Shown piece after piece: positions 6,665 through 35,820 of a stretch of 64,000 nt of DNA (position 1 is its first letter; each line of letters begins with the position of its first letter). Location: positions 744,001 to 808,000 of the forward strand of contig JAMWBK010000006.1 of assembly GCA_029953675.1 (NCBI GenBank). Reading direction: 5' to 3'. A program made the position numbers and the translations under genes. The notes beneath the pieces are model-generated. The model made no database searches. It saw only the letters and a program-made list of their open reading frames with translations, and was not told the origin of the DNA. The DNA comes from Rhodosorus marinus CCMP1338. Its lineage: Eukaryota > Plantae > Rhodophyta.

Positions 6665-6971
6665 TATCGATACTTATGCCGACTCATCGCGATCTAAACA
6701 AGGTAGATATCTTGCCGTTGTTCTGAACACGTGCCATAATGAAGCATGCTGCAAATGTAGACAAAGAGAGGTTTTCTATTGGTTTTGAGGATAAATCAAA
6801 GGAAATCATAACATGTACATATATGTGCTTTAATTTTGACATTTAGATAAGACTTAGAAATACATGGTCAAGAACAAAAGTCCGTAGGCTGTGCACACAA
6901 TAGATAAGCGGGAGGACTGGAAAGGAACATCTATGGCGAATTTTTCGCCTCCTATGCGGTTGCTACCTTTT

Positions 6972-7867
6972 CTAAAACCGATGAGGGAACGCTTCCATGT
7001 ACGACTCAACAGGATCTTCTCCGAAGTACACCTTCCTCAACCGCGTCTGGGAAGGACTGTTTACGCATAGTAAGCGCCTCTTCCGAATGACTTGAACACC
7101 GCGTCCTTGCACATACCACACACCAAGAGAGACTAGCGGGATCAGGAACACTGCAAACACGAGGTTGAACGCAATGTGCTCCCAGATCTTCATGCTTTGC
7201 TGGAACTGGAAGGTAGAACCAAAGAGCATTATATACAGTGAGCGAGGTGTTAAGGATGAAAGTGAGAAAGTCTGTCATCTTACCCCGTAAGGCCACCATC
7301 CATCGTTGATTTTCGCACAGAGAAGGGACCAGGATGCGAAGAATACCATGTAGCCTTCGGTGGCTAGGATATCGGATACTGGTCTTCGTTCAGCCTTCTC
7401 TCTGAATAGAACTTCGTACACTGCGAATACGAGCGGAGGCCCATGAAGAAAATGCATGTAAAAGTCGAAGTCCTCAACCTGCAGCGCAGGTTGAGGACTT
7501 CGGGGTTACGTTAGTCTGGGACTAACGGGTCCCGTGTCATTGGATCGAAATGCACAACCGCGTAATACATCCCTCCCATAAGTATACCCAAAGTGCAAAC
7601 AAGTCCGCTGAGCCTTTCCACCATCCCAGCGAAGACTCTGACCTGCTTGCCGAACATGTAGTCTACCACACACAAGCACAAGTACAGGAGGATGATGAAA
7701 TTGGTCTGCACAGTCAGGAACACAAAGTTTCCGCCAAAGTTGTTGGCAGGTCTATCATCTCTATCCGGAGACCACAGCATCTGCGTAGACGTTATCCCAA
7801 TAAACAAAAACAGCACCAACATGTACAGCGTCGGCTGCACCTTGTGCACAGCAAGATCCATCCCCAT
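6972..7867 (-). pseudogene. FAR-17a/AIG1-like membrane protein, copy 1, disrupted by a 45-nt fold-back insertion
   Basis: Nearly identical to copies 2 and 3. 7483-7527 replaces 7 nt, giving a frameshift and a premature TAA at 7511-7513. Intron at 7206-7283. Confidence 0.85.
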
Positions 7868-8139
7868 TCCAATGAAAAACGAAATACAAACTAGAAAGGC
7901 GCCCTTCCCTAAACAAACTAGTTCTCACCCATGCGTATCACTCTCACGAACAGAACCATACTCTACCTCTGCTCTACATCTCTACGAGCCGGAGCGGGGA
8001 AAGCTTAATACTGATCGATCTACTTATAAGCCGTTGGTGCTTGCCAGTTCAAGAACCAGCGAACGAATCTGCGGGACCTCGACCTCTGACGCTCACCCAG
8101 TTTTCCCCACTGCTCGACCTGTAAGCCCCAACCCGTCCT

Positions 8140-9290
8140 CAACTAACCACTAAATACATCTAAATAGCTATCTAATAGTTAAAGTTCTCCGTAATTATAC
8201 TTGTATTATACATATGTACAAAGTATATACTTTACGGTGTAAACCGTTCAGTAGTCGAAGGAGTCTGGTATATGAATGAATGGGTTTAGTTGGACGAAAG
8301 CGGCTGAGTCTATAACTTGCAAGCTTTCTACTTTGAAAAGGAGTTTCATTTATTCTAAGATTTCAGGTGCGAGTTTACCCCCCCCCCAAAATGAAGCAAA
8401 CGAGGATCATGATTTATGAATATTTAAGTGAAATTACAAACAACCTGGCCCCGAATCCTACCCCTGCGAACAGATGCTTTTTTCTATCGCAGTATTTCTT
8501 TGTGGTCAATACCCAGCCGTTAGGCGTGTTAGTATCCTACTATTGTTTTTGTATATTTTTACCTAGAAGTATTCGGAACTCGAAATCCTAAAAACTTGAG
8601 AGGGAACTAAGCGGGGCCCTTGAGATTTCCTTGAAAACGTTAAAACCGCTTGGACAGAGGAAAAGAGGGCTAAATATGTTCAGACGCGCCTCTTTTCATC
8701 TCGGAGGGTAAAAATAGATCAAAGAGGGGACGGGCAAGTTCGCGGATCGCAGCGGGAAGTCCGTTTCGCCATGGAAACTTACGAATTATGAACTCAGGAC
8801 TCTCTTACGACTAAACCCTTTCATTCTTACAAAACTTCAGCTCTGTACGCATCCAAAAAGTGTTGAAAAGGGTGCCGTCCAAAACACGTTGAAGGCGCCG
8901 TCGCAAAAAAGGTAGAGCGCACAGAGGAATAGATCACGCGCGGTTCCTGCCATTCGTATTTTGAGCTGTTTGTCTTTTGCGCTAAAAACAATCGCTACTG
9001 CCAGGGGGCCTCCGCTATAAGAAAACTGGAGCCGGTCAGGCTCCCATCAATATGCATAAACTGGACACGGTCGGACACCCACCGATATTAGAAAATTGGA
9101 AGACAATTTCATTTTACGTCTGGCGTAGCGCATCAGGCTATTTTAGTAAAAGCATCACCCTATCAAGAGAAAGGTTGAAAGTCAAGCGCGATCCCAAACA
9201 GTTGAAAGCACGAATAGCCTCAAAAAGGTGACTTTCCAGACCAGAAACCACTAACAAACTCACTTCACCCACCTCAACCAACTTCTCTGG
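8140..9290. repeat. Dispersed ~1-kb repeat 'unit B', copy 1 (upstream flank of the AIG1-like gene)
   Basis: Shared blocks (AATGAAGCAAACGAGGATCATGATTTATGAATATTT; CTTACGACTAAACC; CGCCATCAAYATRC) recur at 13100-14830, 27590-28503 and 29358-30970. Confidence 0.75.
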
Positions 9291-10529: not shown

Positions 10530-10704
10530 GGAGGCTGAAAGAAAATAACCCCGAGGGAAAAAAAAGAGTAAGCCCGGCGAAGATTGCGCGCCTCCAACAT
10601 CAAACCGGCGTTCATACGCCACAGCAAGAAACTTAAACGGGTAAACAACGAGGACAGACGGTCAGGGTGTTCGCGGAACAATTCCCGAAGCAACGAGAAC
10701 CAAC
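10530..10704 (-). mobile_element. Short 3' fragment of the CRE-like element
   Basis: Matches 23535-23705 (RWLRELFRE...3' UTR). Confidence 0.9.
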
Positions 10705-10914
10705 GTCTTTATCTGGACTTTACTAGGGTCGACTGACCCTAGAACTATCCATTTATGTACAGACGTTATCCAGAACACTCCGAAAGCCTGTTCAGAGCGG
10801 AAAAGCTATTCAGGGGCTTTCAAAAGCGTGGGAACTTAGTGTAGTAGGTCGTTGTCATCACAAACCAGCTCTCAAAGCTCGATATACAGTGGTTTCCGAG
10901 CTTTTCTTAAAGCA

Positions 10915-11751
10915 TTGAATGAATTTATTTAATCGGAGGCTGAAAGAAAAAAACAAACTCCGAGGGGATAAAAAAGGCTAAGCGCGGCGAAGATCGCGTG
11001 CCCCCAACATCAAAGCAGCGCTCATACGCCACAGCAAGAAACTTGAACTGGTAAACAACGAGGACAGACGGTCAGGGCGTTCGCGGAACAATTCCCGAAG
11101 CCAACGAGGACCAATGGAATCTATAAACCCCAAGCACTCAAACACCAGAGGTATCAGGCGATGAGCCAGAGCCGAAGCATGAAGGCCTGGGGAAGACAAG
11201 GCCCCCGCATATTTCAACTCTTTGCGACGTCTCATAGTGGCAGCGGCAAATCCCCGGCGCTCTCCCGCAGCCGGCAAATAGCGACTAGCTTGAGGATGAG
11301 GAAGAGCAAGATCAACTTACGTCGTACGGCAGCTATCGTCACAGGTGACCACGAGGTCAGCCACGCGGCGTTCATCATTCTGGTATTCTGCAACAGGCAG
11401 GGGCTGCATGTTCAATTTTAAGACCGGCTTGCCGTACGACAGGTCGAAGTTCGCGGTATAATAGGTTCAAGATCCACGTATGTCGTCGGGTTCGGGCGCC
11501 TTTCACCGCGGGGCAGCTGGCGAGCTGGTGAGCGCCAAAATCCGCGGTATCTTCGTTCTGAGAGCATAGATTGCATGGCGATCCCACCTCGGAAGACCAG
11601 GGCGGCCGATGCAAGCCGAGGTATGAACGCAGAGAAGTGCGCAGTTCGAAATCTGTGAGTGCGAGTGGCGGAAAAGCCGGGACGGTCATGAGCCACTGAG
11701 AGCTGAGAAACCTTCCAAGGCTACGCAGCTGGGCGCGATCTCGGGAAGATG
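10915..11751 (-). mobile_element. 5'-truncated CRE-like copy (~840 bp: endonuclease and 3' end)
   Basis: SSSRDRAQLRSLG...CNLC...HQLASCPAVKGARTRRH...RRRKELKY...LIPLVFECLG; ends AATTCATTCAA. Confidence 0.9.
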
Positions 11752-11981
11752 TGTAAGGCATGCTGCAAATGGGCCGAGGAAAGAGAGGTTTTCGGTGTGA
11801 GGATACATTAAGGACATCATAACACGTCCATATATGTGCTTTAATTTTGACATTTAGACAAGAATTAGAAATACATTGTCAAGAGCACAAGTCCGGCAGC
11901 TGTGCACACAATAAATAACCGGAAGACTGGAAAGGAACGTCTATGGCGAATTTTTCGCCTCCTATGCCGTTGATGCCTATT

Positions 11982-12839
11982 CTAAAACCAATGAGGGAAA
12001 ACTTCTATGGACGACTCAACAGGATCTTCTCCGAAGTACACCTTCCTCAACTGTGTCTGGGAAGGACTGTTTACGCCTAGTGAGCGCCTCTTACGAATGA
12101 CTTGAACACCGCGTCCTTGCACATACCACACACCAAGAGAGACTAGCGGGATCAGGAACACTGCAAACACGAGGTTGAACGCAATGTGCTCCCAGATCTT
12201 CATGCTTTGCTGGAACTGGAAGGTAGAACCAAAGAGCATTATATACTGTGAGCGAGGTGTTAAGGGTGAAAGTGAGAAAGTCTGTCATCTTACCCCGTAA
12301 GGCCACCATCCATCGTTGATTTTCGCACAGAGAAGGGACCAGGATGCGAAGAATACCATGTAGCCTTCGGTGGCTAGGATATCGGATACTGGTCCTCGTT
12401 CAGCCTTCTCTCTGAATAGAACTTCGTACACTGCAAATACGAGCGCAGGCCCATGAAGAAAATGCATGTAAAAGTCGAAGTCCTCAACCTGCGCTGCACG
12501 GTCCCGTGTCATTGGATCGAAATGCACAACCGCGTAATACATCCCTCCCATAAGTATACCCAAAGTGCAAACAAGTCCGCTGAGCCTTTCAACCATCCCA
12601 GCGAAGACTCTGACCTGCTTGCCGAGCATGTAGTCTACCACACACAAGCACAAGTACAGGAGGATGATGAAATTGGTCTGCACAGTCAGGAACACAAAGT
12701 TTCCGCCAAAGTTGTTGGCAGGTCTATCATCTCTATCCGGAGACCACAGCATCTGCGTAGACGTTATCCCAATAAACAAAAACAGCACCAACATGTACAG
12801 CGTCGGCTGCACCTTGTGCACAGCAAGATCCATCCCCAT
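11982..12839 (-). CDS. FAR-17a/AIG1-like (ADTRP/AIG1 family) multi-pass membrane protein, copy 2, 259 aa
   Basis: Exons 12839-12294 and 12215-11982 (78-nt GTAAGA...TTCCAG intron) join in frame. Hydrophobic helices with GGNFVFLTVQTN (Thr), MHFLHGP (His) and WWPYGF, as expected for FAR-17a/AIG1 proteins. Confidence 0.8.
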
Positions 12840-13234
12840 TCCAATGAAAAACGAAATACAAACTAGAAAGGCGCCCTTCCCTAAACAAACTAGTTCTCAC
12901 CCATGCGTATCACTCTCACGAACAGAACCATACTCTACCTCTGCTCTACATCTCTACGAGCCGGAGCGGGGAAAGCCTAATACTGATCGATCCATTTATA
13001 AGCCGTTGGTGCTTGCCAGTTCAGGAACCAGCATGCGGGTCCACGACTTCGGCTATTTGCGTTACGGCCAAACTGTCTCTGATCGAAGGAGCCTGGTGCG
13101 AATGAATGGGTCTAGTTGCAAGAAACCTGTGAGTTCATAGCTTGAAAGTTATCACTTTCATCTATTTTTAGATTTAAGGGGCCTAGTTTACTTCAACCCA
13201 CCCCCCCTGCCCCCCGCTCCCTTCACCCCCAGAG

Positions 13235-13427
13235 TTGAATGAATTGGTTTAATCGGAGGCTGAAAGAAAAAAAAACCGAGTGGAAACAAAAGACTAAAGG
13301 CGACGAAGATCGCGCGCCTCCACCATCAAGCAGGGTTCGCCACAGCAAGGAACTTAAACGGGTAAACAACGAGGATAGACTGTCAAGGCGTTCCGAAACC
13401 AAAAAGAACCACCGGAATCCATAAACC
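13235..13427 (-). mobile_element. Short 3' fragment of the CRE-like element
   Basis: Carries the intact terminus CAGCCTCCGATTAAACCAATTCATTCAA. Confidence 0.9.
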
Positions 13428-14140
13428 GAGAGAACTCAGTTAAAGCCCTCTCAATTGAGGCGAGCGATGATAATGATTTATGAATATTTCAAGAAGATGA
13501 CTAACAACCTGACTCCGGATTCTACCCGTCCGAACAGTGAATGATTTTGTTTTTGGGGGGGGTGGTCAGCCGTTAAATCCTGCAATTATTGTCTTTGTAT
13601 ATTTTTGTGAAGGGGCCGGGGAACTCGAAATCCCTGAGAACCTGTCATAATGTGTAGCCCCGGAAAAAGAGTGTTGAGATTTTCTTTAAAAACGTAGTAC
13701 AGTCGGAGGAGGAAAAAAAAAAGCTGAATACGTTCCACATTTCGCAATGGAGGAAAACAGGCTTGAATTGGGGAGCGGTGCATAACGAGGAGCGGTGCAT
13801 AACGATGATCGTTGCGTGAAGTCCGTTCCAAGCGGGAAACTTTCGATTTGTGATACTCAGCGCTCTCTTATGAATGAACCCTTTCATTCTTCCAAGACTC
13901 CAGTTCCGTACGTATCTAAAAAGCGTTTTGAGAGCGGACGGGCCCAAAACACGTGGGAGCATTGTGAGAAACGGTGAAGCGTGCGGATCGTCATATTTTC
14001 ATCTATTCGCTTTTTGCGCTGCTCGTCTTTTGAACTAAAATAAATCTCTGCCTCGCAGGGCGCCAGCGCCATCAACATACATGACCTGGACACGGTCAGG
14101 GCAAACCGACCAATATAAGAAAATTGCACTACGTTTTCAT

Positions 14141-14637
14141 TGGGTCTCCGGCTCAACTATTGGCTGCGAAGTCTTCCACCGCAATGGGGAGCGTGGATTG
14201 GTGATAAGGCGGACGAGGCGACGCTAACACATTGGGGCACATTCCTAGACGAACCAGTTTCTTCGGCACCTGAAGGGACCTGGTACGGGCTCCCTTCTGC
14301 CGCTCTCCGCAGGGGGGCAGCAGCTTCTGTACTTCGCCGCGTGAAAGAACGACGGGGCGCTGAGAGCGTGGCCAGTCTTCCCCGGGAAGAGGGCCGGTCT
14401 CACAGGTTCCACCCTTTCATTGTGGAAACCTTTGGGCATCTGGAAAAGTCATGCTTGGAGTGGCTACGTAAGTGTTCAACCGAACATCCTGAAGAATTTC
14501 TGGTGCTTATCCGCCGTTTAAGTATCACATTGTGGGGGTATCCTAGCAACATGCTCGCCGAGGCGCACCAATGTCGCCTGGGCTTACATGCTCTTCTTCC
14601 TAGCCCCTAGTTTCCTGCTAATAGAGCCAGTAAAACC
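14141..14637 (+). mobile_element. Second CRE-like subfamily, internally deleted 3' fragment
   Basis: LRLNYWLRSLPPQWGAWI...GTFLDE parallels RLTYWLRSLPTHWGRWL...GYFLDE of the full-length RT. It is then fused to HRFHPFIVETFGHL...WLR...RLSITLW (endonuclease C-terminus) and has a distinct 3' UTR. Confidence 0.75.
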
Positions 14638-16577: not shown

Positions 16578-16963
16578 TTGAATGAATTTTGTTTAAGCGG
16601 AGGCTCAGGGACAAAACCTAAAAAAAGAGCTAAGCGCAGCGAAGATCGCGCTGCTCCAACATCAAAGCAGCGTTCATACGCCACAGCAAGAAAACTTAAA
16701 CGGGTAAACAACGAGGACAGACGGTCAGGGCTGTCGCGGAACAATTCCCGAAGCCAACGAGAACCAACGGAATCCGTAACAAACCCAAAGCACTCAGGGA
16801 CCAGAGGTATCAGGCGATGAGATAGAGCCGAAGCACGAAGGGCTGGGGAAGACAGAAGCCCCGCAAATTTATACTCTTTGCGACGTCTCATATTGGCAGC
16901 GGCAAGTCCACGGCGCTTACCCGCAGCCGGCAAATAGCGACTATAGCCTGAGGATTAGGAACA
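16578..16963 (-). mobile_element. 3' fragment of the CRE-like element
   Basis: YLPAAGKRRG..RRRKEYKF...LIPLVPECFG; ends AATTCATTCAA. Confidence 0.9.
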
Positions 16964-17143
16964 ATAATAATATGAGGTTTGTGCAGGAGACGAATTCGCC
17001 CATCCCCGAAACGGGGGAACATAAGTGTGCAATATTTCGATTTTGCCTATGCTCTGTTGGATAAAAAAAGTTGCCATGAACCAGGAGGTGGAATTTCCCG
17101 TTTACTGCGGCCATACCCTCAAAAGCAACCCCAGCCTTGTTCA

Positions 17144-17287
17144 TTGTTTACCCGTTCAAGTTTCTTGCTGTGGCGTATGAACGCTGCTTTGATGTTGGAG
17201 GCGCGCGATCTTCGCCCCGCTTAGTCTGTATTTTTCCCCTCGGCTTTTTTTTCTTTCAGCCTCCGATAAACCAATTCACGCGTTCAT
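17144..17287 (+). mobile_element. Short 3' fragment of the CRE-like element
   Basis: LFTR..FLLWRMNAALMLEAR plus the 3' UTR. Confidence 0.85.
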
Positions 17288-18519: not shown

Positions 18520-18951
18520 TGGTCACTTTGACGACGTCGTACGGCGGAGATAGCCGCCGTACGACGTGTGTTGATCTTGCCGTTGGTAACACTCAGGCTA
18601 GCTATTTGCTGGCTGCGGGAGAGCGTCGTGGATTTCCGCTGCCAGTATGAGACGTCGCAAAGAGTTGAAATATGCGGGGCCTTTCTCTTCCCCAGGCATT
18701 CGTGCTTCGGCTCAGCTCATCGCCTGGTACAACTGGTCATTGAGTGCTTTGGGTTTATGGATTCCATTGGTTCTCGGTGGCTTCGGGAATTGTTCCGCGA
18801 ACGTCCTGACCGTCTGTGCTCGCTTACTCGTTTCAGTTTCTTGCTTTGGTATGAACGCTGCTTTGATGTCGGAGGCGCGCGATCTTCGCCGGGCTTAGTC
18901 TTTTTTTCTCCCTCGGGGTTTTTTTTTCAGTCTCCGATTAAACAACTTACC
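18520..18951 (+). mobile_element. Older 3' fragment of the CRE-like element, directly upstream of the full-length copy
   Basis: VDLAV..ASYL.AAGERRG..RRRKELKY..ECFG...; degenerate tail. Confidence 0.9.
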
Positions 18952-19120
18952 TCATTTCATTCTATGTTGAAGTGGCGTCGGCGCGTCGACCCTTGGTTTC
19001 GTGAGGGTGTATGGTGCTGGCTTTTGGTGGTTTTGAGTCGCAATTGTGTTCTTCGGTGGGAGGCGCTTCTTTCTGCAGCCTTTCCCCCGCATCTTCTAGT
19101 GGTGTGGTGCGTGCTGGGGG

Positions 19121-20533
19121 TTGCTAGCGCCCCTTGGAGGTCGTGGTGGTTTTTCTTTGGTTGCAAACGTTGGGAACAAGTTCTCTTTTTGGGGGTTTCG
19201 TGGGGGAATCGGTTTTTCACACCTTCCAATCGTTATGGTTGGGGTTTCCCCACCCATTCCGGCGGACGGAGCCGTTCTCTCAGCGCGCGTGGAGCTCTGC
19301 GTGGGCGGGTTTAGTACCGCGGCCACCCTCACGGACTGCGCTGACGAGTTAGCCCATGGGATCTGCTCGAAACTGACGAGTCTTCTTGTGACTGCTTCCC
19401 AGGAACACCGCCTGCCCCTGCTGATCGCCTATTTGGAGCGCTTCTCCGCCTCCGCGCCTGCCCCATACCCCCCGGTGCCCGTCCCCGCGGATCCGCACGG
19501 TACAGCGGGGCCTGCCTCCACCCGACCCGAGCGCTCCGCTCCGGTCATTCCTGATTCCGACTGGCCTACCCCTATTCAAGGACAGACGCCTCCTGGGCCC
19601 GCGTCGGGCCCGAATCCTGCTCCCTCCAGTGCCCCACGTGCGACCTATTCGCAGGTCCTACGCAGGGGCTCTTCTGAACAACGCACGACGGCAATGGTGC
19701 GTATGATGCCACAACACATCCCTATTGACTCTTCTCGTCAACTATCTCCGTTACACTTTGTTTGGATGACGAACGTGCGTCCCCAGACCCCCTCTCCTGG
19801 TCGGGGCCGCGCGCCCGTCCACTACCGCGATTTTCGCGACACCATGGCTTCCTCCCTTGGGGTCGCCCCGTCTGAATTCCTATATGTGGACTTCACGGGC
19901 CCTCATGCCTGTTTTCTTGTTACTGACTCGGCTTACCAGTTCCTTCAATCGCTTGTAACCACCCCCGCGCCCCAGCGCTCTGCTCTGGCCAACATGATAC
20001 TGACTCGTCCTCATGTCTCTTTGTTTGTCGAGTTCGATCGTTTTGACGCCGGCTGGGTTCCACCGTCGGCCTTGCAAAACCTGGATGCCTCTCAGGCTTC
20101 GGTTGTCGCGCTACACACTCATGCGGCGCGGCTCTCGCGCATACAGGCGAGCCTCTTCGCGCGTTTTCCTCCTCGCGGGGTCCTCCGCACCGCGCTAGAG
20201 GCCTTCCTCTCCACTGAGGCCACCCTGCTGGAAGCCCACCCTGCGTTTGACCTTCTGCCGCCGACTCTTGAGCACCCTTCCTCCCCTCGCCCTGTCTCCG
20301 AGGCTCGTGACACCGACATGGCAGAAGCACCATCGGCCTCTCCGAATCCGCTGGCTCTGGACACCCTCAGTCAAGACTCCGCTGCTGAAAACCCTGTGTC
20401 TACTTTCTTCAGGTCTTTTAGTTCCTTCGTGCGCCCTCCACGTAAGCGTCGTGCGGCTCCTGAGCCTCCCTCCGAGGCACCTCCTCCGGATATTCGATCT
20501 GCCTTCCCGACTGAGGGGAGGCCCGATGTCTGA
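19121..20533 (+). CDS. ORF1 of the retroelement (470 codons open; first ATG at 19235), Pro-rich linker and putative RRM-like nucleic-acid-binding domain
   Basis: Long uninterrupted ORF with an ATYSQVLRR motif and a beta/alpha pattern (LHFVWMTNV...FLYVDFTGPHACFLV). Its TGA overlaps the ORF2 ATG. Confidence 0.75.
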   Translation: MLAPLGGRGGFSLVANVGNKFSFWGFRGGIGFSHLPIVMVGVSPPIPADGAVLSARVELCVGGFSTAATLTDCADELAHGICSKLTSLLVTASQEHRLPLLIAYLERFSASAPAPYPPVPVPADPHGTAGPASTRPERSAPVIPDSDWPTPIQGQTPPGPASGPNPAPSSAPRATYSQVLRRGSSEQRTTAMVRMMPQHIPIDSSRQLSPLHFVWMTNVRPQTPSPGRGRAPVHYRDFRDTMASSLGVAPSEFLYVDFTGPHACFLVTDSAYQFLQSLVTTPAPQRSALANMILTRPHVSLFVEFDRFDAGWVPPSALQNLDASQASVVALHTHAARLSRIQASLFARFPPRGVLRTALEAFLSTEATLLEAHPAFDLLPPTLEHPSSPRPVSEARDTDMAEAPSASPNPLALDTLSQDSAAENPVSTFFRSFSSFVRPPRKRRAAPEPPSEAPPPDIRSAFPTEGRPDV

Positions 20534-23500
20534 GTCTTCCTCCTCCGCGTGCGTGTCGTCCCGGTTACCCCTGTTTACCAGTGACCGCTCAGCCTGGCAT
20601 GAGCGTGTTCTCTCGTGGTTTTCGCACCTTGTCGCCTCCTACCCGGACGGTTCCCTTCCCCTTTGTCGTCAGAGCACGGCCGTACGGCTCCCTCGTCGAC
20701 TTCATAAGCCCCTAGGATTGGTGTTGGATTTTCTCTGGCAGCAGGTCGCCGCGAACCCTCACTGCTCTCTTCGCTGGGAACTCTTGTTCTTTTTTCCCCG
20801 CCTCGTGCTCACATCCTCTACCGTCCCCCTCAACTCCACATCCTCGCCGGGTCCACCCTCGCCGAAAACTGCAAATGTTCCTTTCCGGCGACTTTGAGGA
20901 CCTCGAACGTCTTTATTTCGCTTCTCTCTCTTCCTTTTCTCCTAGTGCTTCCTCAGCTTTTAGGTCTTCTCGACAGAATCGGGCGCGTCACGCGGTGGCA
21001 GGCGGTGATCTGCGGCGGGCAGCCGGGATCCTCCAGCAGCGGCAACCTGTGGTTCCATACTCCGATGATCTTTCTTCACCGCTCCGTTTGCTCTTTCCCT
21101 CGGAAGGCTCCCCTTGGGACTCCTCGTTTGAATCAGTGTTGGAAGAGTACCACGCCGCGCCACATCCCAGTGCGCGGTTAGTGGTCAATCTGGAGGCGGT
21201 GCGTGAGTTGGTTCATGATGCTCCGAAGGGCCGTTCCCCAGGGCCCTCGGGGCTGCGGGTGGAATATCTCCGTTTCTTAAGTGATGAAGGTTTGAAGGCG
21301 TTGGCGTGGGTGGTCGAAGCGCTTGTGAATGGTGATCCCCTGTGTGAGTGTGCGTGGTTCTTTGTCGGGCGTTCGCAGTTGTGTCTGCTTTCGAAGCCCG
21401 GCCACACGGCCTCGAGCCCTGCTATTCGCCCTATTGGCCTGGTTGAGGTGGTCCGCAAATTGGCGGCGCGATGGTTAGTGAAAATCCTGGTTCCCGAATC
21501 CCGCCGTTTCTTTGGGCACGTGCAGTTAGGCGTGGGCTATCGTGGTGGCTGTGAGTTGTTGTCTGTTTTACTCCGTTCGGAAATGGCGTACTCCCCAGAT
21601 TCTGGGCTCCTCTCTGTAGATTTTACCAATGCGTTCAACCGCGTCTCTCGTCCGGCTCTCATGCACGTGGTGCGCGAAGTCTTCCCTGTAGGCTTTCCCT
21701 TTGTTAGTAGACTTTATTCTCCGCTTGGTCGTGGGGCTACCTATGACACCCTTGGCGCTTCCTCACACACGTTTGCGGCGCGCACAGGGGTACAACAGGG
21801 TGATCCCTTGTCCCCTTTCCTACATGCCTGTGGACTACAACTCGTCTTGCTTTGTCTTCGCTCCGAATTCCCGCAGGTTCGTACGGTTGCATACCACGAC
21901 GACGTGTGCCTCCTGGGGCCCCCTGATACTCTAGCACTCGCTTATGATCGTCTCCGCTCCTTGGCTGCGCGGGTTGACCTGGAGGTTAATCATCACAAAT
22001 CGTTCTACTGGGGAGGTGTAGCTGCACAAGAGCAGCAGGTACCTGCGTCGTTCCAGGATATTTGGAGACCGGATGGTTTTGTCCACTTAGGCATCCCCTA
22101 CGGGTCGCCGTCCTTCGTTGAAGGCGAGTTGCTGCAGCTCCTCGGTAAGCACAGACAGCTGGTTGCAGAGCTTCGACGGCTACCTCCGGGCTTTCTCCAG
22201 TGCTCGTTGTTGCTGTTTCGGTATTGTTGCAGTCAGCGGTTAACCTATTGGCTTCGCTCACTTCCAACTCATTGGGGCCGGTGGTTGGCCACTCGTGCGG
22301 ATGCTGAAAGTTTCCGTGACCTGGGGTATTTTCTCGATGAAGAGCTGAGCGCTCTGCCGCGACCCACCTGTGATGTTGTGCGCGCCCAGGTAGGCCTCCC
22401 ATTGCGATTGGGGGGACTGGGCCTCTGCAATCGTGTTGTGGTCCAACCTGCAGCCGCAGTAGGGGCCTGGGGAACCGCACTTCCCACTTTGAGCAGCTTG
22501 GGTATCTCGAAGTTCCGCAATTTGATGGCGAGCCTCTCGCGGGGTGTCTTGCTTCGCAGCGTACCGGAAAGCGCCCAAGACTTGTTTCTGGAGCTCCAAA
22601 CCGCCCTGAATTCCTGTACTAGTCTCCCCGAAACCGTTCAACCCCGTCTTCCGGACTGGCGAGCTGTATTTGACCGCTCTCGAGGCTCCGCCCCGGGGAT
22701 TCGTCCTGCGCCTGAACCTGTTCTAGGGAGATTGACCCAGTGGTTGCCGCAGAAGAAGAAGTTCCAGTTGATCCTCCTGATGATTCCCAGCGCGCTGGGA
22801 GCCGAGCTCAAGCACGCACGGATGCGCTGCAAAATATCCTTTCTTGGGACTTGCACCGTGCTGCATATGGCCGACTCCTCGCGCAGATGGTCTCATCTTC
22901 TCGCGCTCGCGCCCGCCTACGTAGTCTTGGAGGGGTTCTTAGCTCTCAGTGGCTCATGACCGTACCAGCCTTTCCGCCACTCACACTGTCGGATTTCGAA
23001 GTGCGTACTTCACTGCGCTTATACCTCGGCTTACATCAGCCCCCTTGGCCGTACGAGATGGGTTCGTCGTGCCCTCTCTGCTCTCAGACTGAAGACAACG
23101 CAGATTTTGGCGCCCACCTGCTCGCTAGTTACCCGGCGGTGAAAGGTGCTCGAACCCGCCGCCACACACGGATCTTGAACCTGTTATACCGGGAACTTCG
23201 GCCTATAGTCCGGCAAGCCGGTCTGGAAATCGAACGTGAGAAACCTTTACCCGTCGCGGACTTTCAAAATGATGAACGCCGTGTAGCCGACCTGGTGATC
23301 ACCTGTGACGACAGCCGCCGTACCACATACGTTGATCTTGCTGTTCCTAACCCTCAAGCTAGTCGTTATCTCCCGGCTGCGGGGGAGCGCCGTGGATCTG
23401 CCGCCGCCAGCATGAGACGCCGCAAAGAGATCAAATACGCGGGGGCTTTGTCTTCCCCTGGTGTTCGTGCTTCGGCACTAGCACATCGCTTGGTACCCCT

Positions 23501-23669
23501 GATCATTGAGTGCTTTGGGTTCATGGACTCTGTTGGTTCTCGCTGGCTTCGGGAGTTGTTCCGCGAACGCCCTGACCGTCTTCAATCGTTGTTTACCCGC
23601 TTAAGTTTCCTGCTGTGGCGCATGAATGCCGCTTTGATGTTGGAGGCGCGAGTACTTCGCCGCGCTTAG
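20526..23669 (+). CDS. ORF2: reverse transcriptase, CCHC knuckle and REL endonuclease (~1047 aa reconstructed; two frameshifts at ~20810 and ~22727)
   Basis: GRSPGPSGLR, IRPIGLVE, QLGVG, VDFTNAFN, GVQQGDPLSP, YHDD, HLGIPYGS, GLPLRLGGLG; CPLC..H; RRVADLV...VDLAV, RRKEIKY, PLIIECFG. Confidence 0.9.
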
Positions 23670-23764
23670 TCTTTTTTTCCCCTCGGGGTTTTTTTTTCAG
23701 CCTCCGATTACACCATTCATTCATTTCATGGATCGAGTGAATAGCCGAATAGCGAAGTCCAAAC

Positions 23765-23995
23765 AGCGAACGCCAATGCACCGAAAGAGACGAATTGAAA
23801 AATATCGGAGGAAATCGATCGTTATCGGACCGTGTATCGGACGAACCCTGTTTTGTCTTTTCCGTTCAGGTCCGATAAACTCATTTCGGTGGGAGTCCAC
23901 AGAACATGGGCTCTATTATTACGCAATACAGGGTTAATAAATGTTTATTGGACGCAATCGGACTTTTTTTTTATCGGACGGAGCTGACAACCATA
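23765..23995 (-). mobile_element. hAT-like end, second copy
   Basis: Reverse complement begins TATGGTTGTCAGCTCCGTCCGAT and is colinear with 6133-6385. Confidence 0.6.
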
Positions 23996-24288
23996 GTAAT
24001 GAGTGTACAAAGTATAACAAGCGGGTATGAAAAGCAAAATGTAAAAGTGGAAGTATAAAAAACTAATCGGAGTGGATTGCGAAAAGCCTACTAGTTCCCA
24101 GTCTCACACTACCACACCGGCATTTACGCAACCTTTCTAAAATTTCGAGGTCGCTAGAGTTTACCGCACGATGGTCAACGTTAGTGATGCACGTTGCACC
24201 ATAATGGACGGATTGTCCTCATTCTGAAGAGCGTACCACGTAAAATTGGAGTCCCCCCTCCTTGACTGAGGGTGCCTAGTTGCCGGAG

Positions 24289-24880
24289 TGTTACCGCAAC
24301 CTCCCTGGCGCTCTTTCCGGACTGCATGTTTCTTTGAGTCTAACTCTCTGGTTACTGGAAAACTAACAACCCCCGGTCGGTATCCTACCAGAGCGAAAGG
24401 GGAGTCCCAAGTGCCTGATTACTTACTCATCAGTAAGAATTAGCTGCTAAACTAATGGCGCTCTCATAGCTACGAAGTGCAACCCAAGAGTTGCCTCTCC
24501 ACAGCGTGCGGTTCATCGCCAGAGCTTTCTTCAGGGAGGTGGGGTCCGAGCCTAGATGCCTGGTGAGGCGGGGAAGGTCTGCCATTTTACGTGCTGAAAG
24601 TCGTCCGTATGCCTCGACTCCGGCGCTGTAATGCTACCCTAGTTTTGGAGGCGCGCACTCTACGCCCTTCCTAGAGTACCTCAATCCGGGACCTTTGCCA
24701 CCTACCAAAATGATGATAATGATGGTCGGGACAGTGCGAGGTCCAAGCAACAGAAGCGGAGCGAGCGAGGCATAAGTATCCCTCACAAGGTAGCAACTCC
24801 AAGCAGCAGGGACTAGGATCCCTACGGAAGGACCCAAACCGAAGATGGTCGGGAATGTCGAGGTCCAAGGCAACTAGGGC
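24289..24880 (+). mobile_element. Family C LTR-like repeat with an internal ~123-bp duplication
   Basis: Long match to 35105-35700 (GTCCGAGCCTAGATGCCTGGTGAGGCGG etc.); begins TGTTACC. Confidence 0.65.
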
Positions 24881-25284: not shown

Positions 25285-26304
25285 TTGTATCAAGTGACCG
25301 GTTATTCGGATGCAAGTTAAGCGAGTGATGAGGAAACCAGGAAGAGTACCTCAGGATCGTTGGTGATGATCGACAGATCACCAGTGACGTTCATGGAGGC
25401 AAAGATCGATTGCTCAGTCAACCGCGCAGGCCGAATATCAAGCGCTCGTGAATATGTTGACAACCAAACTAGGGGAGCAAGAGTTCATTGAACAAACTGC
25501 CAGAGCGATCGACGTGCCGATGGTCGCGTTCACTGCGCACCAACTCATGTTTCTGTTGGGAGACTACTGGAGACAGTCGAACATCGCAGCATGTATCTGC
25601 GAAGTTACAGTACGCACGCGAGAAATGCACTTCCAGTGAGGTGCTACTTAGTAAAACCACTTAAAATAGATATCTCGGCAACGGATGAGATGATAGCTGA
25701 TATTCTCAACCAGGCACTCACCAAGGATTGCACACAGAAACTGAGACGCGGTGTTTGTGTCGTGGGGCGACCTTCCTCGGTGGCATAAGGCCGAGGGGGA
25801 GTGTTAGCCGCTATTGACGTTGCGTCCATAGCATAGTTTTTAAGGTCAGACCAGATAGCGTGGTGTGATAGTACATTTCGTGGATAGATAGAATACTGTA
25901 GACCTAAAGTAGAATCAACGAGGACCTCAAAGGTGGTTATCATGCATTGCAGGAATAGATTACTTTGGCCCAAAGCGTGAGCTTGCCGGATAGAGAAACA
26001 GTGAGGAAGGCCACAAATGCTGGCGAAATACAACGGAGATCACTGATTTAGAACGCAGCCATATGGCGATCCTGGTGAATAATACTTTCGCATCGATATT
26101 TATGCCAAAGTCATCGCGATCTAAACAAGGTAGATGTTGAGGTCCAATTCATGCTTACAGTGTCAAGATGGCAGGGTGGTCGCTGGCGGTTTACCTCACG
26201 CTTGCCCTTGTTCTGAGTATGTGTCCATTGAAGCATGCTGCAAATGGAGGCGAGAAAAGAGTGATTTTCCGCTGGCGTGAGGATACATCAAGGATATCAT
26301 AACA
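25285..26304 (+). mobile_element. Ty1/copia 3' remnant, copy 3, with an uninterrupted 503-bp LTR (25802-26304)
   Basis: TGYSDAS...SIAQSTAQAEYQA...TDEMIADIL; PPT GAGGGGGAG; LTR termini TGTTA...TAACA. Confidence 0.85.
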
Positions 26305-26456
26305 CTTGCATCTACGGCTTTAAAATTGAAATTTAAGAATTAGAAATACATTGTCAAGAGCACAAGTCCGTCGGCTGGGCACACAATAGATAACCGGAGG
26401 ACTGGAGAGGAACATCTACGGCGAATTTTTCGCCTCCTATGCGGTTGCTACCTTTC

Positions 26457-27314
26457 CTAAAACCGATGAGGGAACACTTCCAAGTACGACTCAACAGGAT
26501 CTTCTCCGAAGTACACCTTCCTCAACTGTGTCTGGGAAGGACTGCTTACGCCTAGTGAGCGCCTCTTCCGAATGACTTGAACACCGCGTCCTTGCACATA
26601 CCACACACCAAGCGAGACTAGCGGGATCAGGAACACCGCAAACACGAGGTTGAACGCAATGTGCTCCCAGATCTTCATGCTTTGCTGGAACTGGAAGGTA
26701 GAACCAAAGAGCATTATATACTGTGAGCGAGGTGTTAAGGGTAAAAGTGAGAAAGTCTGTCATCTTACCCTGTAAGGCCACCATCCATCGTTGCTTTTTG
26801 CGCAGAGAAGGGACCAGGATGCGAAGAATACCATGTAGCCTTCGGTGGTTAGGATATCGGCTACTGGTCTTCGTTCAGCCTTCTCTCTGAATAGAACTTC
26901 GTACACTGCGAATACGAGCGGAGGCCCGTGAAGAAAATGCATGTAAAAGTCGAAGTCCTCAACCTGCGCTGCACGGTCCCGTGTCATTGGATCGAAATGC
27001 ACAACCGCGTAATACATCCCTCCCATAAGTATACCCAAAGCGCAAACAAGTCCGCTGAGCCTTTCAACCATCCCAGCGAAGACTCTGACCTGCTTGCCGA
27101 ACATGTAGTCTACCACACACAAGCACAAGTACAGGAGGATGATGAAATTGGTCTGCACCGTCAGGAAAACGAAGTTTCCGCCAAAGTTATTGGCAGGCCT
27201 ATCAGCTCTATCCGGAGACCACAGCATCTGCGTAGACGTTATCCCAATAAATAAAAACAATACCAACATGTACAGCGTTGGCTGCACCTTGTGCACAGCA
27301 TGATCCATCCCCAT
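26457..27314 (-). CDS. FAR-17a/AIG1-like membrane protein, copy 3, 259 aa
   Basis: Exons 27314-26769 and 26690-26457 are intact; about 13 aa differ from copy 2. Confidence 0.8.
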
Positions 27315-27589
27315 TCCAATGAAAAACAAAAATACGAACTAGAAATACGCCCTTCCCCAAGCAACAGAAATCTCCATCGCCTTCACGAAAAGGGCCATAG
27401 CTCTACCCCCGTATGCCTCCGCTCTACATCTCTGCGAGCCGGTGCGAGGAAATCTTAAAACTGATCGCTCTACTTATAGGTAGCCCGTTGCTACCTGCCA
27501 ATTCACGTACCGAGCATGCAGGTCCGCGACCTCTACGCTTGAAGCACTTCCCACTTCTCCAGACGTGTAAGTATTCCCTCATCAACTAA

Positions 27590-28503
27590 CCATTAACTAC
27601 ATTTTAAATAACTATCTAATAATAAATTGTTTTCGATATTTATACTCATATTATACGTATATACAAAGTATATACTTTACGACCCCAAATCGTGGTGGTC
27701 GATAGGAGTCTGACGACAATGATGAAGTGCAGGTGGAAAGAAGCTCCTGAGTTCATAATTCGAAAGTTTTCACCAAGAAGCGGAGTTTCTTGTATTCTAA
27801 GATTTAGTGGGCTCGTTTCTTCTCTCCCCACCGAGAAAATAAAGCTCCCTCAATTGAAGCAAAAAGAGGATCATGATTTATGAAATTTCAATAACAAAAC
27901 TAACAACCTGGCCTCGTTTTCTACCCCACCGAAAAATGAATGATTTTTGTGAAGGAAGGCGGTGATCGTTTTTTTCGGACAATAGTCGTTGGGATCAAAC
28001 TATTGTATTTTGTATTCTCGCAAAGGAGTCTTCGACGCCTGAAATTCGAATAATAATTGACCGGAGAGGCCCGTAGGAGAAAAGGGTTGAGATTTCTTTA
28101 AAAACGTTTAAAGACGTGAAAAACCGTTGGAAGTGAAAACGCCAATCATGTTTCAGAAGGGACGTAGTAAAAAAACGTTAAGGCACGTCCAAAAGTGTTG
28201 GGATGGCTACAAAAAAAAGCCAAGAGATAAAAAAGTCCGTTTTCCAGTGAGAGCGGTGAGCAAGATAACGATGATCCGTTCTCAAGCGAAACTTTGGATT
28301 AGTGAACAGAGAGTAGTGTACACAGAAATCTCTTACGACTAAACCATTTTCATTCTTGCAAGACTCCAGCTCCGTACGTATCACAAAAACGCCGATAGCG
28401 GCCTAAAGCACGTTTCCTGTTTTTTGAAAGGGTACGGGACAAAGCGAAGTGACGGATGAAGGAAAAGACCACATTTTCGTGCTATTGGCCTTTTCAGCTG
28501 TTC
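27590..28503. repeat. Unit B, copy 3
   Basis: Colinear with 8140-9000; fused at its end to a CRE-like fragment. Confidence 0.7.
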
Positions 28504-28504
28504 G

Positions 28505-29359
28505 AAAACGCGTTGCAAAACACCCTTTCTTGGGACTTGCACCGTGCTGCCTATGGCCGACTTCTTGCGCAGATGGTCTCATCTTCCCGAGATCTCGCCC
28601 GCCTGCTTAGTCTTGGCGGGTGTATCAGCTCACAGTGGCTCATGACCGTCCCCTCTTTTCCTCCACTCACACTGACAGATTTTGAAGTGCGCACTTCTCT
28701 ACGTTTATACCTCGGTTTGCATCAGCCGCCCTGGCCTTCCGAGATGGTTCGCCGGCCCTCTATGCTCGCCAGCTGCCCCGCTGTGAAAGGCGCCCGAACC
28801 CGTCAACATACGCGGAACTTGAACCTGTTATACGGCGAACTTCGACCTACCGGACGGCAAGCCGGTCTTGAAATTGAACGTGAGAAGCCCCCGCCTGGCG
28901 CTGATGCACGCCGGGTGGCTGACCTCGTGGTCACCTGTGACGATAGCCGCCGTTCGACGTACGTGATCTTGCTGTTCCTAATCCTCATGCTAGTCGCTAT
29001 TTTGTCGGCTGCGCGAGAGCGCCGTGGATTTGCCGCTGCCACTATCAGACGCGCAAAGAGTTGAAATATGCGGGGACTATGTCTTCCCCAGGCATTCGTG
29101 CTTCGGCTCTAGCTCATTGCCTGGCCTCTCTGGTCATTGAGTGCTTTGGGTTTATGGATTCCGTTGCTTCTCGTTGGCTTCGGGAATTGTTCCGCGAACG
29201 ACCTGACCGTCTATCCTCGTTGTTTACCCGTTTTAAGTTTCTTGCTCTGGCGTATGAACGCTGCTTTGATGTTGGAGGCGCGCGATCTTCGCCACCCGTA
29301 GTCTTTTTTTCCCCTCGGGGATTTTTTCTTTCAGCTTTCGATTAAGCCAATTCATCCAA
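28505..29359 (+). mobile_element. 5'-truncated CRE-like copy (~850 bp)
   Basis: ALQNTLSWDLHRAAYGR...RRVADLVVTCDDSRR...; ends AATTCATCCAA. Confidence 0.9.
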
Positions 29360-29711: not shown

Positions 29712-30094
29712 CCTGGCCTCGGGTTCTTCCCCTCCGAAAAATGAATGATTTTTGCAGGGCAAGGCGGAGCTCGGTTTTTTTCGGGACAATAGTCGTCGGG
29801 ATCAAACTATTGTATTTTGTATTTTCGCAAATGATTCTTTGAACCTGAAATCCCCATAATAATTGACGGGATTCTACCCGTAAAAAAGGGTTGAGATTTC
29901 TAATAAAACGTTTAAAAATGGGAAAAACCGATGGAAGTGAAATCGCTAAATACGTTCTAGAAGGGACGCAGGAAAAAAACGTTAGGCACGTCCAAAGGTG
30001 AGGCGATGGCAAAAAAAGGATAAAAAAGTCCGTTTTCCAGTGCGAGCTGTGAGCAAGATAACGATGATCCGTTGTCAAGTAAAAACCTTGGATT

Positions 30095-30485
30095 GAACGA
30101 ATCGGTCTAATCGGAGGCTGAAAGAAAAAAACCCCGAAGGAAAAAAAGACTAGGCCCGGCGAAGATCGCGCGTCTCCAACATCAAAGCAGCGTTCACACG
30201 CTACAGCAAGAAACTCCTCTTAAACAACGAGGACAGACGGTCAGGGCGTTCGCGGAACAATTCCCGAAGCCAACGAGAACCAACGGAATCCATAAACCCA
30301 AAGCAGTTAATGACCAGAGGTACCGGGCGATGAGCTAGAGCCGAAGCAAGAATGCCCGGAGAAGACAAGGCCTCCGCATATTTCAACTCTTTGAGACGTC
30401 TCATATTCGCGGCGGCACATCCACGGCGCTCTCGCGCAGCCGGCAAATAGCGACCAGCGTGAGGATTAGGAACAGCAAGATCAAC
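30095..30485 (-). mobile_element. 5'-truncated CRE-like insertion with a 4-bp GATT target-site duplication
   Basis: GATT at 30091-30094 and 30486-30489; the empty site TTTGGATTAGTGA is present at ~28292-28304. Confidence 0.85.
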
Positions 30486-31162
30486 GATTAGTGACCTCAG
30501 AACTCTCTTACGACTAAAAACCTTTTCATTATTACGAGACTCCAGCTCCGCACGTATCAAAAGTGCGCCGATAGCGTACGGCCTAAAACACGTTTTCTTG
30601 TTGTTTGAAAGGGTACGGGGTAAATCTAGGTGACGGACGGAGGAAAAGATCACATTTTCGTGCTATTGGCCTTTTGAGCTGTTCGTCTTTTGAGCTGTTC
30701 GTCTTTTGCGCTGTTCGTCTTTTGCGCTGTAAACAACCTCTACTGGCGCCCCTCGGACAAACGAAAACTGGAGACAGTTAGCGCCATCAATATACGTAAC
30801 TGGACATGGACGGGCACCCATTCATATCAGAAAACTGGAAGAATTTTTCTTTGGTCCCTGTCAAAGGGAACTGGTTAAAAAGTCGCTGGACCACCCCCCT
30901 CTCCCCCCCCGGTCCAAAGAGCTGGAAGCATGAGCACGGAAAAAGTCAATCCGCATTGAACAGGTCAGTGCTAAGCAAGTCCAAGACAGGACAGATTTTA
31001 GAGTAGCTGATGATGCACACACCTCTACCCACAACCCACAAGCCTGTATCCCTGAAAAAACCTAGTGTGGGACTTCTGGTTTATATTTGGCCTGAGGAAG
31101 ACTATGTAACGTGGACTTGAGACCCATGACCGTTGATCTGGCTCAGCTGAACCTACTACGAC

Positions 31163-31503
31163 AACTAAGGCAAATAGCAAACCAAGGCACATGCTCTAAG
31201 ACTTGGTTCTCGTTGGCTTCGGGAATCCTTCCGCGAACTAAGGCAAATAGCAAACCACGGCGCAAGCTCTAAGACTTGGTTCGCGTTGGCTACGGGAATT
31301 GCTCCGCGAACTCCCCGACCGTATGTCCTCGTTTACCAGTGAAGTTTCTTGCTGTGGTTTTGAACGCTGCTTTGATGTTGGAGGGGCGCGATCTTCGCGT
31401 GCGCATAGTCTGTTTTTTTCCCTCGCGGTTTTTTCTTTCAGTCTCCGACGAAACAAATTCATTCAAGGCTTCAGCCTCCGACGAAACAAATTCATTCAAG
31501 GCT
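31163..31503 (+). mobile_element. Short CRE-like 3' fragment with tandemly duplicated 5' junction (73 bp) and 3' end (33 bp)
   Basis: AACTAAGGCAAATAGC at 31163 and 31236; CTCCGACGAAACAAATTCATTCAAGG at 31443 and 31476. Confidence 0.85.
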
Positions 31504-35105: not shown

Positions 35106-35820
35106 GACGGAAAGGGGAGTCACAAATGTGTGACTACTAAATCATCAGTAAACACTAGCTAGTTAAACTACTGGCGCTCTAGTAAAGTCCAGTCCAGTCT
35201 CATAACTACGCGGTGCAACTCGAGAGTTGAAAACTATCCACAGCGTGCGGAACATCGCCGCGAGAGTTTTCTTCGCGGAAGTGGTGTCCGAGCCTAGATG
35301 CCTGGTGAGGCGGCGAAGGTCTGCAATTGTACATGGTGCAAGTCGTCCGTATGCTTCGACTCTGGCGCTGTAATGCTGCCCTAGTTTTGGAGGCGCGCTC
35401 CCTACGCCCGTCCTAGAGTACCTTATTCCGGACCCTAGCCTCCGACTAAAATGACGGTGGTGACGGTAGGTACAGTACAGGTCCAAGCAATCGAGGCGCA
35501 GCGAGCGAGGCAGAGTTGTCTCTCACCGGATGCAACTCCAAGGAACAGGGACTAGGATCCCTACGTAAGGACCCACACTGATGATGGTCGGCACAAAGCA
35601 AAGTCCATTACCAAGTCCAAGGCAACAGAGACGCAGCGAGCGAGGTAGAGTTATCCCTCACAAGGCAGCAACTCCAAGCAACAGGGGCTGGGAGCAGGAG
35701 GCTAGGGTAGGAGCTACCCGTGACCGAGCGAGAGAATTACAAGTATTTGACCATGCGAATTATCGAGCTGGGCGTGTGGCTTTTAGTTTCCTCTTGAGTC
35801 AATACTTGCGGGCTTGACAA
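35105..35820 (+). mobile_element. Family C LTR-like repeat directly after the gypsy integrase remnant
   Basis: Homologous to 24395-24880; may end ...GGGCTTGACA. No matching 5' LTR was recognised upstream of gag. Confidence 0.55.

Follow-up and report, generated by a model that had tools for sequence, protein, structure and literature searches.

The window analysed here, a 64,000-nucleotide stretch of the nuclear genome of the red alga Rhodosorus marinus, carries at positions 18961-23723 of the plus strand a full-length copy of a non-long-terminal-repeat retrotransposon, that is, a long interspersed nuclear element (LINE). It has two open reading frames (ORFs), of which the second encodes a reverse transcriptase (RT) and, at its C-terminal end, a restriction-like endonuclease (RLE). 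A second full-length copy lies on another chromosome, at L004:8119-12856 (contig JAMWBK010000013.1), and is 97.8% identical to window positions 18992-23722. Along the window copy we assigned the following features, which include the untranslated regions (UTRs) and the target-site duplications (TSDs) that frame it; lengths of proteins are in amino acids (aa).

18955-18960, plus strand: 5' TSD, TTTCAT
18961-18991, plus strand: 5'-junction nucleotides (31 nt), not shared with the L004 copy, which has 15 different nucleotides
18992-19234, plus strand: 5' UTR; homology with the second copy begins at 18992
19235-20533, plus strand: ORF1, 432 aa, with its first ATG at 19235; intact in both full-length copies
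20526-20533, plus strand: stop-start overlap ATGTCTGA, the ORF2 ATG lying 5 nt before the ORF1 TGA
20526-23669, plus strand: ORF2, 1047 aa when read across two frameshifts
20835, plus strand: frameshift 1, an extra T (CAACTCCAC here, CAACCCAC in L004)
21421-22005, plus strand: RT core, Pfam RVT_1 (E 4e-11)
22726-22728, plus strand: frameshift 2, one G lost (a run of three G here, four in L004)
23070-23132, plus strand: CCHC motif, C-x2-C-x11-H-x4-(C), from profile alignment to R2
23160-23440, plus strand: RLE, from profile alignment to the R2 RLE, with a weak direct match to R2 9nl2
23670-23723, plus strand: 3' UTR, 54 nt, T-rich, containing CCCCTCGGGG and CAGCCTCCGATTA and ending in ATTCATTCA; conserved in nine other copies
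23724-23729, plus strand: 3' TSD, TTTCAT

Frame 2 is open across 19100-20533, and the probability of a 477-codon open frame arising by chance, calculated from base composition, is about 2e-6. A first-pass annotation of this DNA had given ORF1 a length of 430-470 aa, and both ends of that range can be recognised: 432 aa from the ATG and 470 codons from a TTG at 19121. A single upstream ATG, at 19011, is present in the 5' UTR. As also proposed there, the stop of ORF1 (TGA, 20531-20533) overlaps the start of ORF2 at 20526, which is the first in-frame ATG of a frame that is open from 20199. From this ATG, ORF2 runs through frame 0 (20526-20897), frame 1 (open 20716-22959) and frame 0 again (open 22716-23669) to a TAG at 23667-23669. 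Its parts are, in order, a conserved N-terminal region, the RT, a linker, the CCHC motif and the RLE. RVT_1 was the sole domain recognised in a Pfam search of the element's ORFs, and the catalytic YHDD aspartates, at 21898-21903, correspond to the invariant D342/D343 of the family alignment. The endonuclease residues comprise RHT, E (in EREKP), D (in RVADL, 23289-91), D (in YVDLAV, 23334-36) and K (in RRRKEIKY). Within the N-terminal 230 aa of ORF2 there are three Cys residues only, with no Cys-His pattern and no zinc finger in the Pfam search, which bears out the earlier remark that ORF2 lacks such a finger. Alignment with nine other copies reveals no poly(A) at the 3' end; the 3' UTR had been put at about 50 nt without poly(A), close to the 54 nt found. 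The description of the system as compact is not supported: an ORF2 of 1047 aa is similar in size to the R2 proteins of 1114-1390 aa in the PDB, and an ORF1 of 432 aa comes on top of it. The sense strand of 18992-23723 is unusually A-poor (A 15%, C 31.5%, G 27%, T 27%), whereas mammalian L1 shows the reverse.

The second copy, reached via a 96%-identical fragment in an exhaustive protein search, supplies the further full-length copy whose recovery the first-pass annotation had proposed. Its ORF1-ORF2 junction, GGCCCGATGTCTGAGTC, is identical to that of the window copy, and it carries lesions of its own: two nonsense codons, a 22-nt deletion and a 28-nt insertion. Because the two copies are broken at different places, the extra T and the lost G in the window are private mutations of the ancestral ORF2, and the common ancestor had two intact ORFs, the second of them 1047 aa long and starting at the overlapping ATG. 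The N-terminus of ORF2 aligns with that of a relative, P0001, from residue 16 on (E 1e-6), so ORF2 coding begins at the overlap. The fourth ligand of the CCHC motif is Tyr in the window copy (23130-23132) and Cys in two truncated copies (10916-11848 and 28502-29359). With two frameshifts in ORF2 and a Cys-to-Tyr change in the CCHC motif, the window copy is dead. Its family was active in R. marinus so recently that copies have diverged by about 2%. The L004 copy is nested within the final ~115 bp of another, older copy, with a duplication of ATATTGG. Around this nested arrangement (L004:8000-12960) there are further fragments, at L004:13323-13538, and more distant ones at about 2664, 4671, 5029 and 25219.

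Both the window copy and its truncated kin have the insertion footprints of a LINE, namely TSDs, a common 3' end combined with 5' truncation to varying extents, and the absence of terminal repeats. A BLAST search with the element found nine further fragments in the window that share the 3' end, each truncated at a different 5' point, and their alignment fixes the 3' terminus at ...CAGCCTCCGATTAAACCAATTCATTCA, position 23723. The 9-bp flanking repeat noted earlier, TCATTTCAT, is truly present twice (18952-18960 and 23721-23729), but TCA, with which it begins, is also how the element itself ends. For this reason only TTTCAT is unambiguous and the TSD measures 6-9 bp; the first 3 bp may be element sequence or microhomology. 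Across copies, TSD lengths range from 6 to 10 bp, the longest being the clean 10-bp ATATTATTAT of the copy at 16579-16963. Judging from the comparison of the two full-length copies, the 31 nt at 18961-18991 are probably extra or untemplated 5' nucleotides, and unrelated stretches of this kind preceding the homology (31 nt in the window, 15 nt in L004) are as expected at LINE 5' junctions.

To place the element among LINEs, we compared the family profile with known proteins and scored ORF2 with hidden Markov models (HMMs) of RLE clades, with references from the RLE-LINE alignment that Mahbub et al. published in 2017 (PMC5678591, supplement S5B). Alignment of the profile with R2 proteins took in the RT N-terminal extension, RT, linker, CCHC and RLE (E 8e-49), whereas that with L1 ORF2p covered the RT only (1e-19); L1 and R2 were also the best PDB matches. 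With a C-terminal Cys-His motif and, after it, a PD-(D/E)xK endonuclease that has E, D, D and K, ORF2 marks the element as an RLE-bearing LINE. Among the clade HMMs, CRE-II (Cre-1_BM, Cre-1_HM) gave 96.5 bits and trypanosomatid CRE (SLACS, CZAR, CRE1, CRE2) 81.7 bits, against 38 for NeSL/Utopia and 34 for R2, and those of R4 and HERO gave no match to the window ORF2. In a neighbour-joining tree on corrected p-distances (493 columns), the CRE group including all relatives had 100% bootstrap support; within it, the CRE-II HMM leads trypanosomatid CRE by only 15 bits and inner nodes stay below 50%. An RT phylogeny of the kind that the first-pass annotation had suggested, here with references from the published alignment and not with Repbase/Dfam elements, leads to the CRE group and not to R2, NeSL, R4 or HERO, and the call of a CRE-like element with a restriction-like endonuclease is upheld by the R2-RLE alignment, CRE scores of 82-97 bits and full bootstrap support.

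Membership of the CRE group is not membership of the CRE clade in its strict sense. Classical CRE elements insert at a single position in spliced-leader genes, end in poly(A), have one or two zinc fingers and mostly contain one ORF (2025 re-analysis, PMC12278014). In R. marinus, insertion in a spliced-leader gene, poly(A) and N-terminal zinc fingers are all absent: no Rfam family was found anywhere in the window, hence no spliced-leader or other RNA gene at insertion sites, and the element is flanked by older copies or AT-rich DNA. It has the RT lineage and endonuclease of the classical elements but departs from their four features, and we assign it to the CRE group and not to the strict CRE clade. 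Homologous proteins are numerous (6638 representative proteins match at E<=1e-3, 49 at 1e-30), and relatives occur in Pyropia vietnamensis, Closterium, Symbiodinium, Diplonema and Octopus. The suggestion of an undescribed lineage goes too far: the element falls in a subclade with 90% support, which lies inside the known CRE group and not outside all clades. Its newness was judged against the published RLE-LINE alignment, proteins and metagenomes, and Repbase or Dfam families outside this comparison may include it. A literature search found no paper on Rhodosorus retrotransposons.

The stop-start overlap is not peculiar to R. marinus. The best relative, P0001 (41% identity), has a 476-aa ORF1 ending in a TAA that overlaps the ORF2 ATG, as TAATG; L001 and L003 carry UAAUG. 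A metagenome scan with the subclade RT alignment yielded 80 loci, and in the closest of them a long upstream ORF likewise stops on an ATG of the ORF2 frame:

L009, L011, L014, L021: ATGA overlap
L012: ATGATTAG overlap
L024: ATGGCTAG overlap
L026, L033, L038: ATGAGTGA overlap

Relatives at 30-41% identity show three geometries (UAAUG, AUGA and AUGNNUGA). In eight independent families (window/L004, L001/L003, L009, L011, L012, L014, L021 and L026), ORF2 has no in-frame AUG before the overlapping one. Some overlapping ATG is present in about 19% of long ORFs at these loci, so that one case would mean little; eight out of eight families cannot be put down to chance. An overlap at L083, with seven in-frame ATGs upstream, was rejected as a chance occurrence. 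Every two-ORF element, those from marine metagenomes included, falls together with the Pyropia element into one clade with 90% bootstrap support, in which Rhodosorus pairs with P0001 at 86%, and more distant relatives (25-28% identity) have single ORFs of 1000-1300 codons. By sequence comparison, then, these two-ORF elements form one subclade of the CRE group. The claim of two separate ORFs is confirmed by the unchanged junction in the 97.8%-identical copy and by the overlaps kept in the relatives; a fusion of the two ORFs in one frame, which would have told against it, was seen neither in L004 nor in those relatives.

How ORF2 would be translated from such an arrangement can be narrowed down from the same comparison. 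Recurrence of the overlap in eight families supports termination-reinitiation, as in SART1, and sequence evidence thereby favours the mode of translation suggested in the first-pass annotation. If instead ORF2 were reached by leaky scanning, through an internal ribosome entry site or from a shorter transcript, subgenomic or 5'-truncated, the two-ORF anatomy would be real and the overlap would reflect nothing beyond tight packing. This view can point to the absence of significant RNA structure or a known reinitiation motif near the overlap, and to the 19% background of overlapping ATGs, but against it stands an overlapping AUG that is first in frame in all eight families, at 30-41% identity and in three geometries. 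Leaky scanning in particular is unlikely because ribosomes would have to pass 14 AUGs between the ORF1 and ORF2 starts. The next in-frame AUG after the overlapping one is 93-660 nt further downstream. We consider these other routes together improbable.

Frameshift fusions are common in retroelements, and the ORF1 and ORF2 frames do overlap, which speaks for a fusion protein made by programmed ribosomal frameshifting at the junction. ORF2 is, however, in the +1 frame relative to ORF1 in the window and in the -1 frame in L001 and the ATGA families, which argues against such a fusion; moreover, the overlap spans just 1-8 nt, contains no slippery run and always places the AUG exactly at the stop. 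A frameshift fusion is in our view most improbable, and termination-reinitiation at the overlapping AUG remains the preferred reading.

In the protein encoded by ORF1, linkers rich in Pro and Ser accompany a conserved central alpha/beta domain, and a basic patch (RKRR) lies at the C-terminal end. The protein is homologous to ORF1 of L003, L009 and L011 over the central region (REVxLGNxRP...ELLDVDFHGRxxFFLVH...AVxRF), whereas the Pyropia-like branch has a second, unrelated-looking ORF1 type; the upstream ORF of the Pyropia locus L005 showed no BLASTP similarity to ORF1. ORF1 relatives were obtained only by first locating relatives of ORF2, and neither a direct word-indexed homologue search nor a metagenome scan with the ORF1 alignment returned anything. 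ORF1 gave no Pfam match, Transposase_22 of the L1 type included, and showed no coiled-coil/RRM/CTD architecture like that of L1-type ORF1 proteins; the best PDB profile match had E 0.44. Weak profile matches to the PTPRN2 ectodomain (E 0.44) and the DbpA RNA-binding domain (E 0.17) were set aside as non-evidence. Predicted secondary structure of the central region reads beta-alpha-beta-beta-alpha, an order compatible with a fold like that of the RNA-recognition motif, although the models are too low in confidence to use. By analogy with other LINE ORF1 proteins, the ORF1 protein (ORF1p) probably binds RNA.

Building on what the sequences show of anatomy, homology, clade placement, overlap conservation and insertion footprints, we infer a life cycle in which ribosomes would reinitiate, ORF1p would bind RNA and the 3' UTR would be recognised. 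A bicistronic RNA of ~4.7 kb would be transcribed, and ribosomes would translate ORF1 into a 432-aa, probably RNA-binding protein. At the ORF1 stop, a fraction of them would reinitiate at the overlapping AUG (AUGUCUGA) to make a small amount of the ORF2 protein (ORF2p). ORF2p, probably with ORF1p, would then bind the conserved, poly(A)-less 54-nt 3' end of its own RNA, nick chromosomal DNA at loosely defined sites and copy the RNA through target-primed reverse transcription (TPRT). Such a cycle would leave duplications of 6-10 bp, many 5'-truncated copies and extra 5'-junction nucleotides.

We give a probability of roughly 80% to the reading as a whole, that is, a dead copy of a recently active CRE-group element with a C-terminal RLE and this life cycle. 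Several observations count against it. Neither full-length copy seen is intact, and any present-day activity would be hypothetical. Inner nodes of the CRE group reach 10-50% bootstrap in the neighbour-joining tree, which lacks references for the CRE-group lineages Ambal, Odin and Cnl1 (Cnl1/MoTeR). An ORF1 profile found nothing significant in Pfam or the PDB, and single-sequence AlphaFold models of ORF1 and of its central domain had predicted local distance difference test (pLDDT) scores of 39 and 42, too low to be usable. RNA structure around the overlap did not exceed that of shuffled sequences (fold z +0.17 and +0.32), in a comparison that took in no search for 18S rRNA complementarity, and a helix in the 3' end (GUUGGAGGC/GCCUCCGAU) showed no compensatory changes, with a fold z of -1.3. 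A single stop-start overlap, finally, is not rare by chance, so the argument for coupling rests on recurrence.

The surroundings of the element bear on where the family inserts. Besides the full-length copy, the window contains the following family members:

18549-18954, plus strand: older family member, 5'-truncated to the final ~406 bp, ~82% identical to 23310-23723
18534-18567, no strand assigned: 14-nt perfect inverted repeat at the 5' junction of that older copy, from a repeat search
6390-6681, 10530-10709, 10916-11848, 13235-13443, 16579-16963, 30093-30497, minus strand: family fragments
17141-17278, 28502-29359, 31271-31466, plus strand: family fragments

At least nine 5'-truncated fragments in both orientations thus occupy 25 kb (window 6390-31466), which resembles a transposon island. 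The older copy at 18549-18954 ends 6 bp upstream of the full-length copy, meaning that the new copy landed 6 bp past the old one's end. Template jumping as the origin of this tandem arrangement was rejected, because the 6-bp duplication separates the two copies and they are only ~82% identical.

An endonuclease or RNA 3' end that recognises the family's own 3' region would also bring copies together, in contrast to mere survival in gene-poor transposon islands. Both full-length copies lie at or in the 3' end of older copies (6 bp after it in the window, inside the last ~115 bp in L004), at 31271-31466 a 27-nt 3' fragment sits 6 bp beyond a copy, with a 6-bp repeat, AGGCTT, and at least ten fragments fall within 25 kb. 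Yet the insertion points differ, as do the TSDs in sequence and length (TTTCAT, ATATTGG, ATATTATTAT); the copy at 16579-16963 lies in AT-rich unique DNA; some fragments were multiplied by segmental duplication; and the case at 31271-31466 could be replication slippage. Moreover, the R. marinus nuclear genome is compact (8392 genes in 31 Mb, with 15% repeats; PMC10250338), so selection alone would concentrate surviving copies. Self-targeting appears rather unlikely to us.

Several of these arrangements have details of their own. Some fragments were multiplied by segmental duplication and not by new insertion. A segment carrying a FAR-17a/AIG1-like gene is present in three copies at 82-92% identity (6711-8470, 11758-13050 and 26201-27933), with ORFs at 12285-12839 and 26760-27329, both on the minus strand, and element fragments abut two of the segment copies. 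At 31271-31500, AGGCTT follows the 3' end of a copy and recurs after a 27-nt repeat of the bases with which the element ends, the cause being either replication slippage or a second, minimal insertion in the same place. Next to the full-length copy, its 3' flank (23767-23999) is repeated at 74% identity at 6129-6380 on the minus strand, abutting the fragment at 6390-6664; this repeat is rich in ATCGGA, the reverse complement of the TCCGAT that the 3' UTR of the element contains. The plus strand at 14149-14577 holds a fragment of another, distinct family of this kind, whose C-terminal region has 37% protein identity to the end of ORF2. A dispersed repeat at 24395-24852 and 35110-35591 is 79% identical between its copies, and 24630-24666 resembles the last ORF2 codons at 70%. 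Self-comparison also revealed a tandem array at 54299-55002 with a period of ~111 bp and ~75% identity between units. The genes of the window are ordinary eukaryotic ones (FAR-17a/AIG1-like, 2OG-Fe(II) oxygenase, V-SNARE, and a DUF1801 gene at 47652-48230), and no tRNA genes were found in it. The DUF1801 gene is an exact match to a protein of assembly GCA_029953675.1, contig JAMWBK010000006.1. Among the relatives, a (TG)n run precedes the element at L003:1-75 and a (TG/CA)n run follows the Pyropia element at L005:~10700-10780; some members of the subclade may target (TG)n microsatellites.

Early-branching RLE LINEs are described as single-ORF and site-specific, and ORF1 as a gain of younger LINEs of the apurinic/apyrimidinic-endonuclease (APE) type, in reviews (PMC3894237). 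Against this background we put forward, tentatively and at somewhat less than even odds, an unrecognised CRE-group subclade in red algae and other marine eukaryotes that would have gained ORF1 independently of APE-type LINEs, with obligatory stop-start coupling, and whose Rhodosorus branch would have lost both the N-terminal zinc fingers and site specificity. If this is true, ORF1 and translational coupling are either a convergent or a much older LINE trait than the textbook view has it. The well-supported CRE-like clade with a separate ORF1 offers a comparative series for termination-reinitiation in eukaryotes, and a way into the question of how many times, and at what point, LINEs acquired ORF1. 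The R2-like proteins explored for gene insertion gain from it a predicted RLE enzyme from a red alga, non-site-specific and without zinc fingers though not unusually small.

Among known systems, the trypanosomatid CRE elements (SLACS, CZAR, CRE1 and CRE2) share with the algal element the RT grouping, a C-terminal Cys motif with an RLE, and the RT signature YxDDVxxxxPP. SLACS and CZAR are described with two ORFs, and the name of SLACS ORF2, '132 kDa protein', is also given, by derivation from Swiss-Prot, to Symbiodinium relatives. Unlike these elements, the algal one has no RNA-gene site, poly(A) or zinc finger, and does have an ORF1 with a stop-start overlap. CRE-II (Cre-1_BM and Cre-1_HM, with the Symbiodinium, Diplonema, Octopus and Closterium relatives) shares the motifs RPIAxGE, QLGVGxxGGCE, DxxNAFN, GVQQGDPLGP and YxDD. 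Those relatives nevertheless score ~200 bits on the CRE-II HMM compared with 96 for the algal element, and split from the two-ORF subclade at 90% bootstrap; the ones examined have one long ORF each, in several cases with zinc fingers or PHD domains at the N-terminus.

EhLINE1 of Entamoeba histolytica has two ORFs, is ~4.8 kb long and is assigned to the R4 side of the tree, and we know of no stop-start overlap in it. It differs from the algal element in that the R4 HMM gives no match to the algal ORF2. Besides two ORFs and a similar length, the two have in common a restriction-like endonuclease and untargeted insertion, EhLINE1 having been described as lacking targeted insertion (PMC1635306). 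R2 (8gh6, 9dou, 9nl3) has the same ORF2 plan, from the RT N-terminal extension to the PD-(D/E)xK endonuclease, and aligns end to end; the TPRT mechanism of R2 probably applies to the algal element as well. R2 differs in being strictly specific for 28S rDNA and in having a single ORF, with zinc-finger and Myb domains at the N-terminus; its HMM gives the algal ORF2 only 34 bits.

The closest tested precedent for the algal overlap is SART1 of Bombyx mori. This element comes from an unrelated clade, has an APE endonuclease and poly(A) and targets telomeres; its coupling needs a downstream RNA structure, and no such structure was detected at the algal overlap. Its ORF1 and ORF2 are nonetheless joined by the same kind of overlapping stop and start, UAAUG, which works by translational coupling, shown experimentally according to the account in PMC3894237 citing Kojima et al. 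2005; exactly this UAAUG occurs in the relatives of the algal element at L001 and L003.

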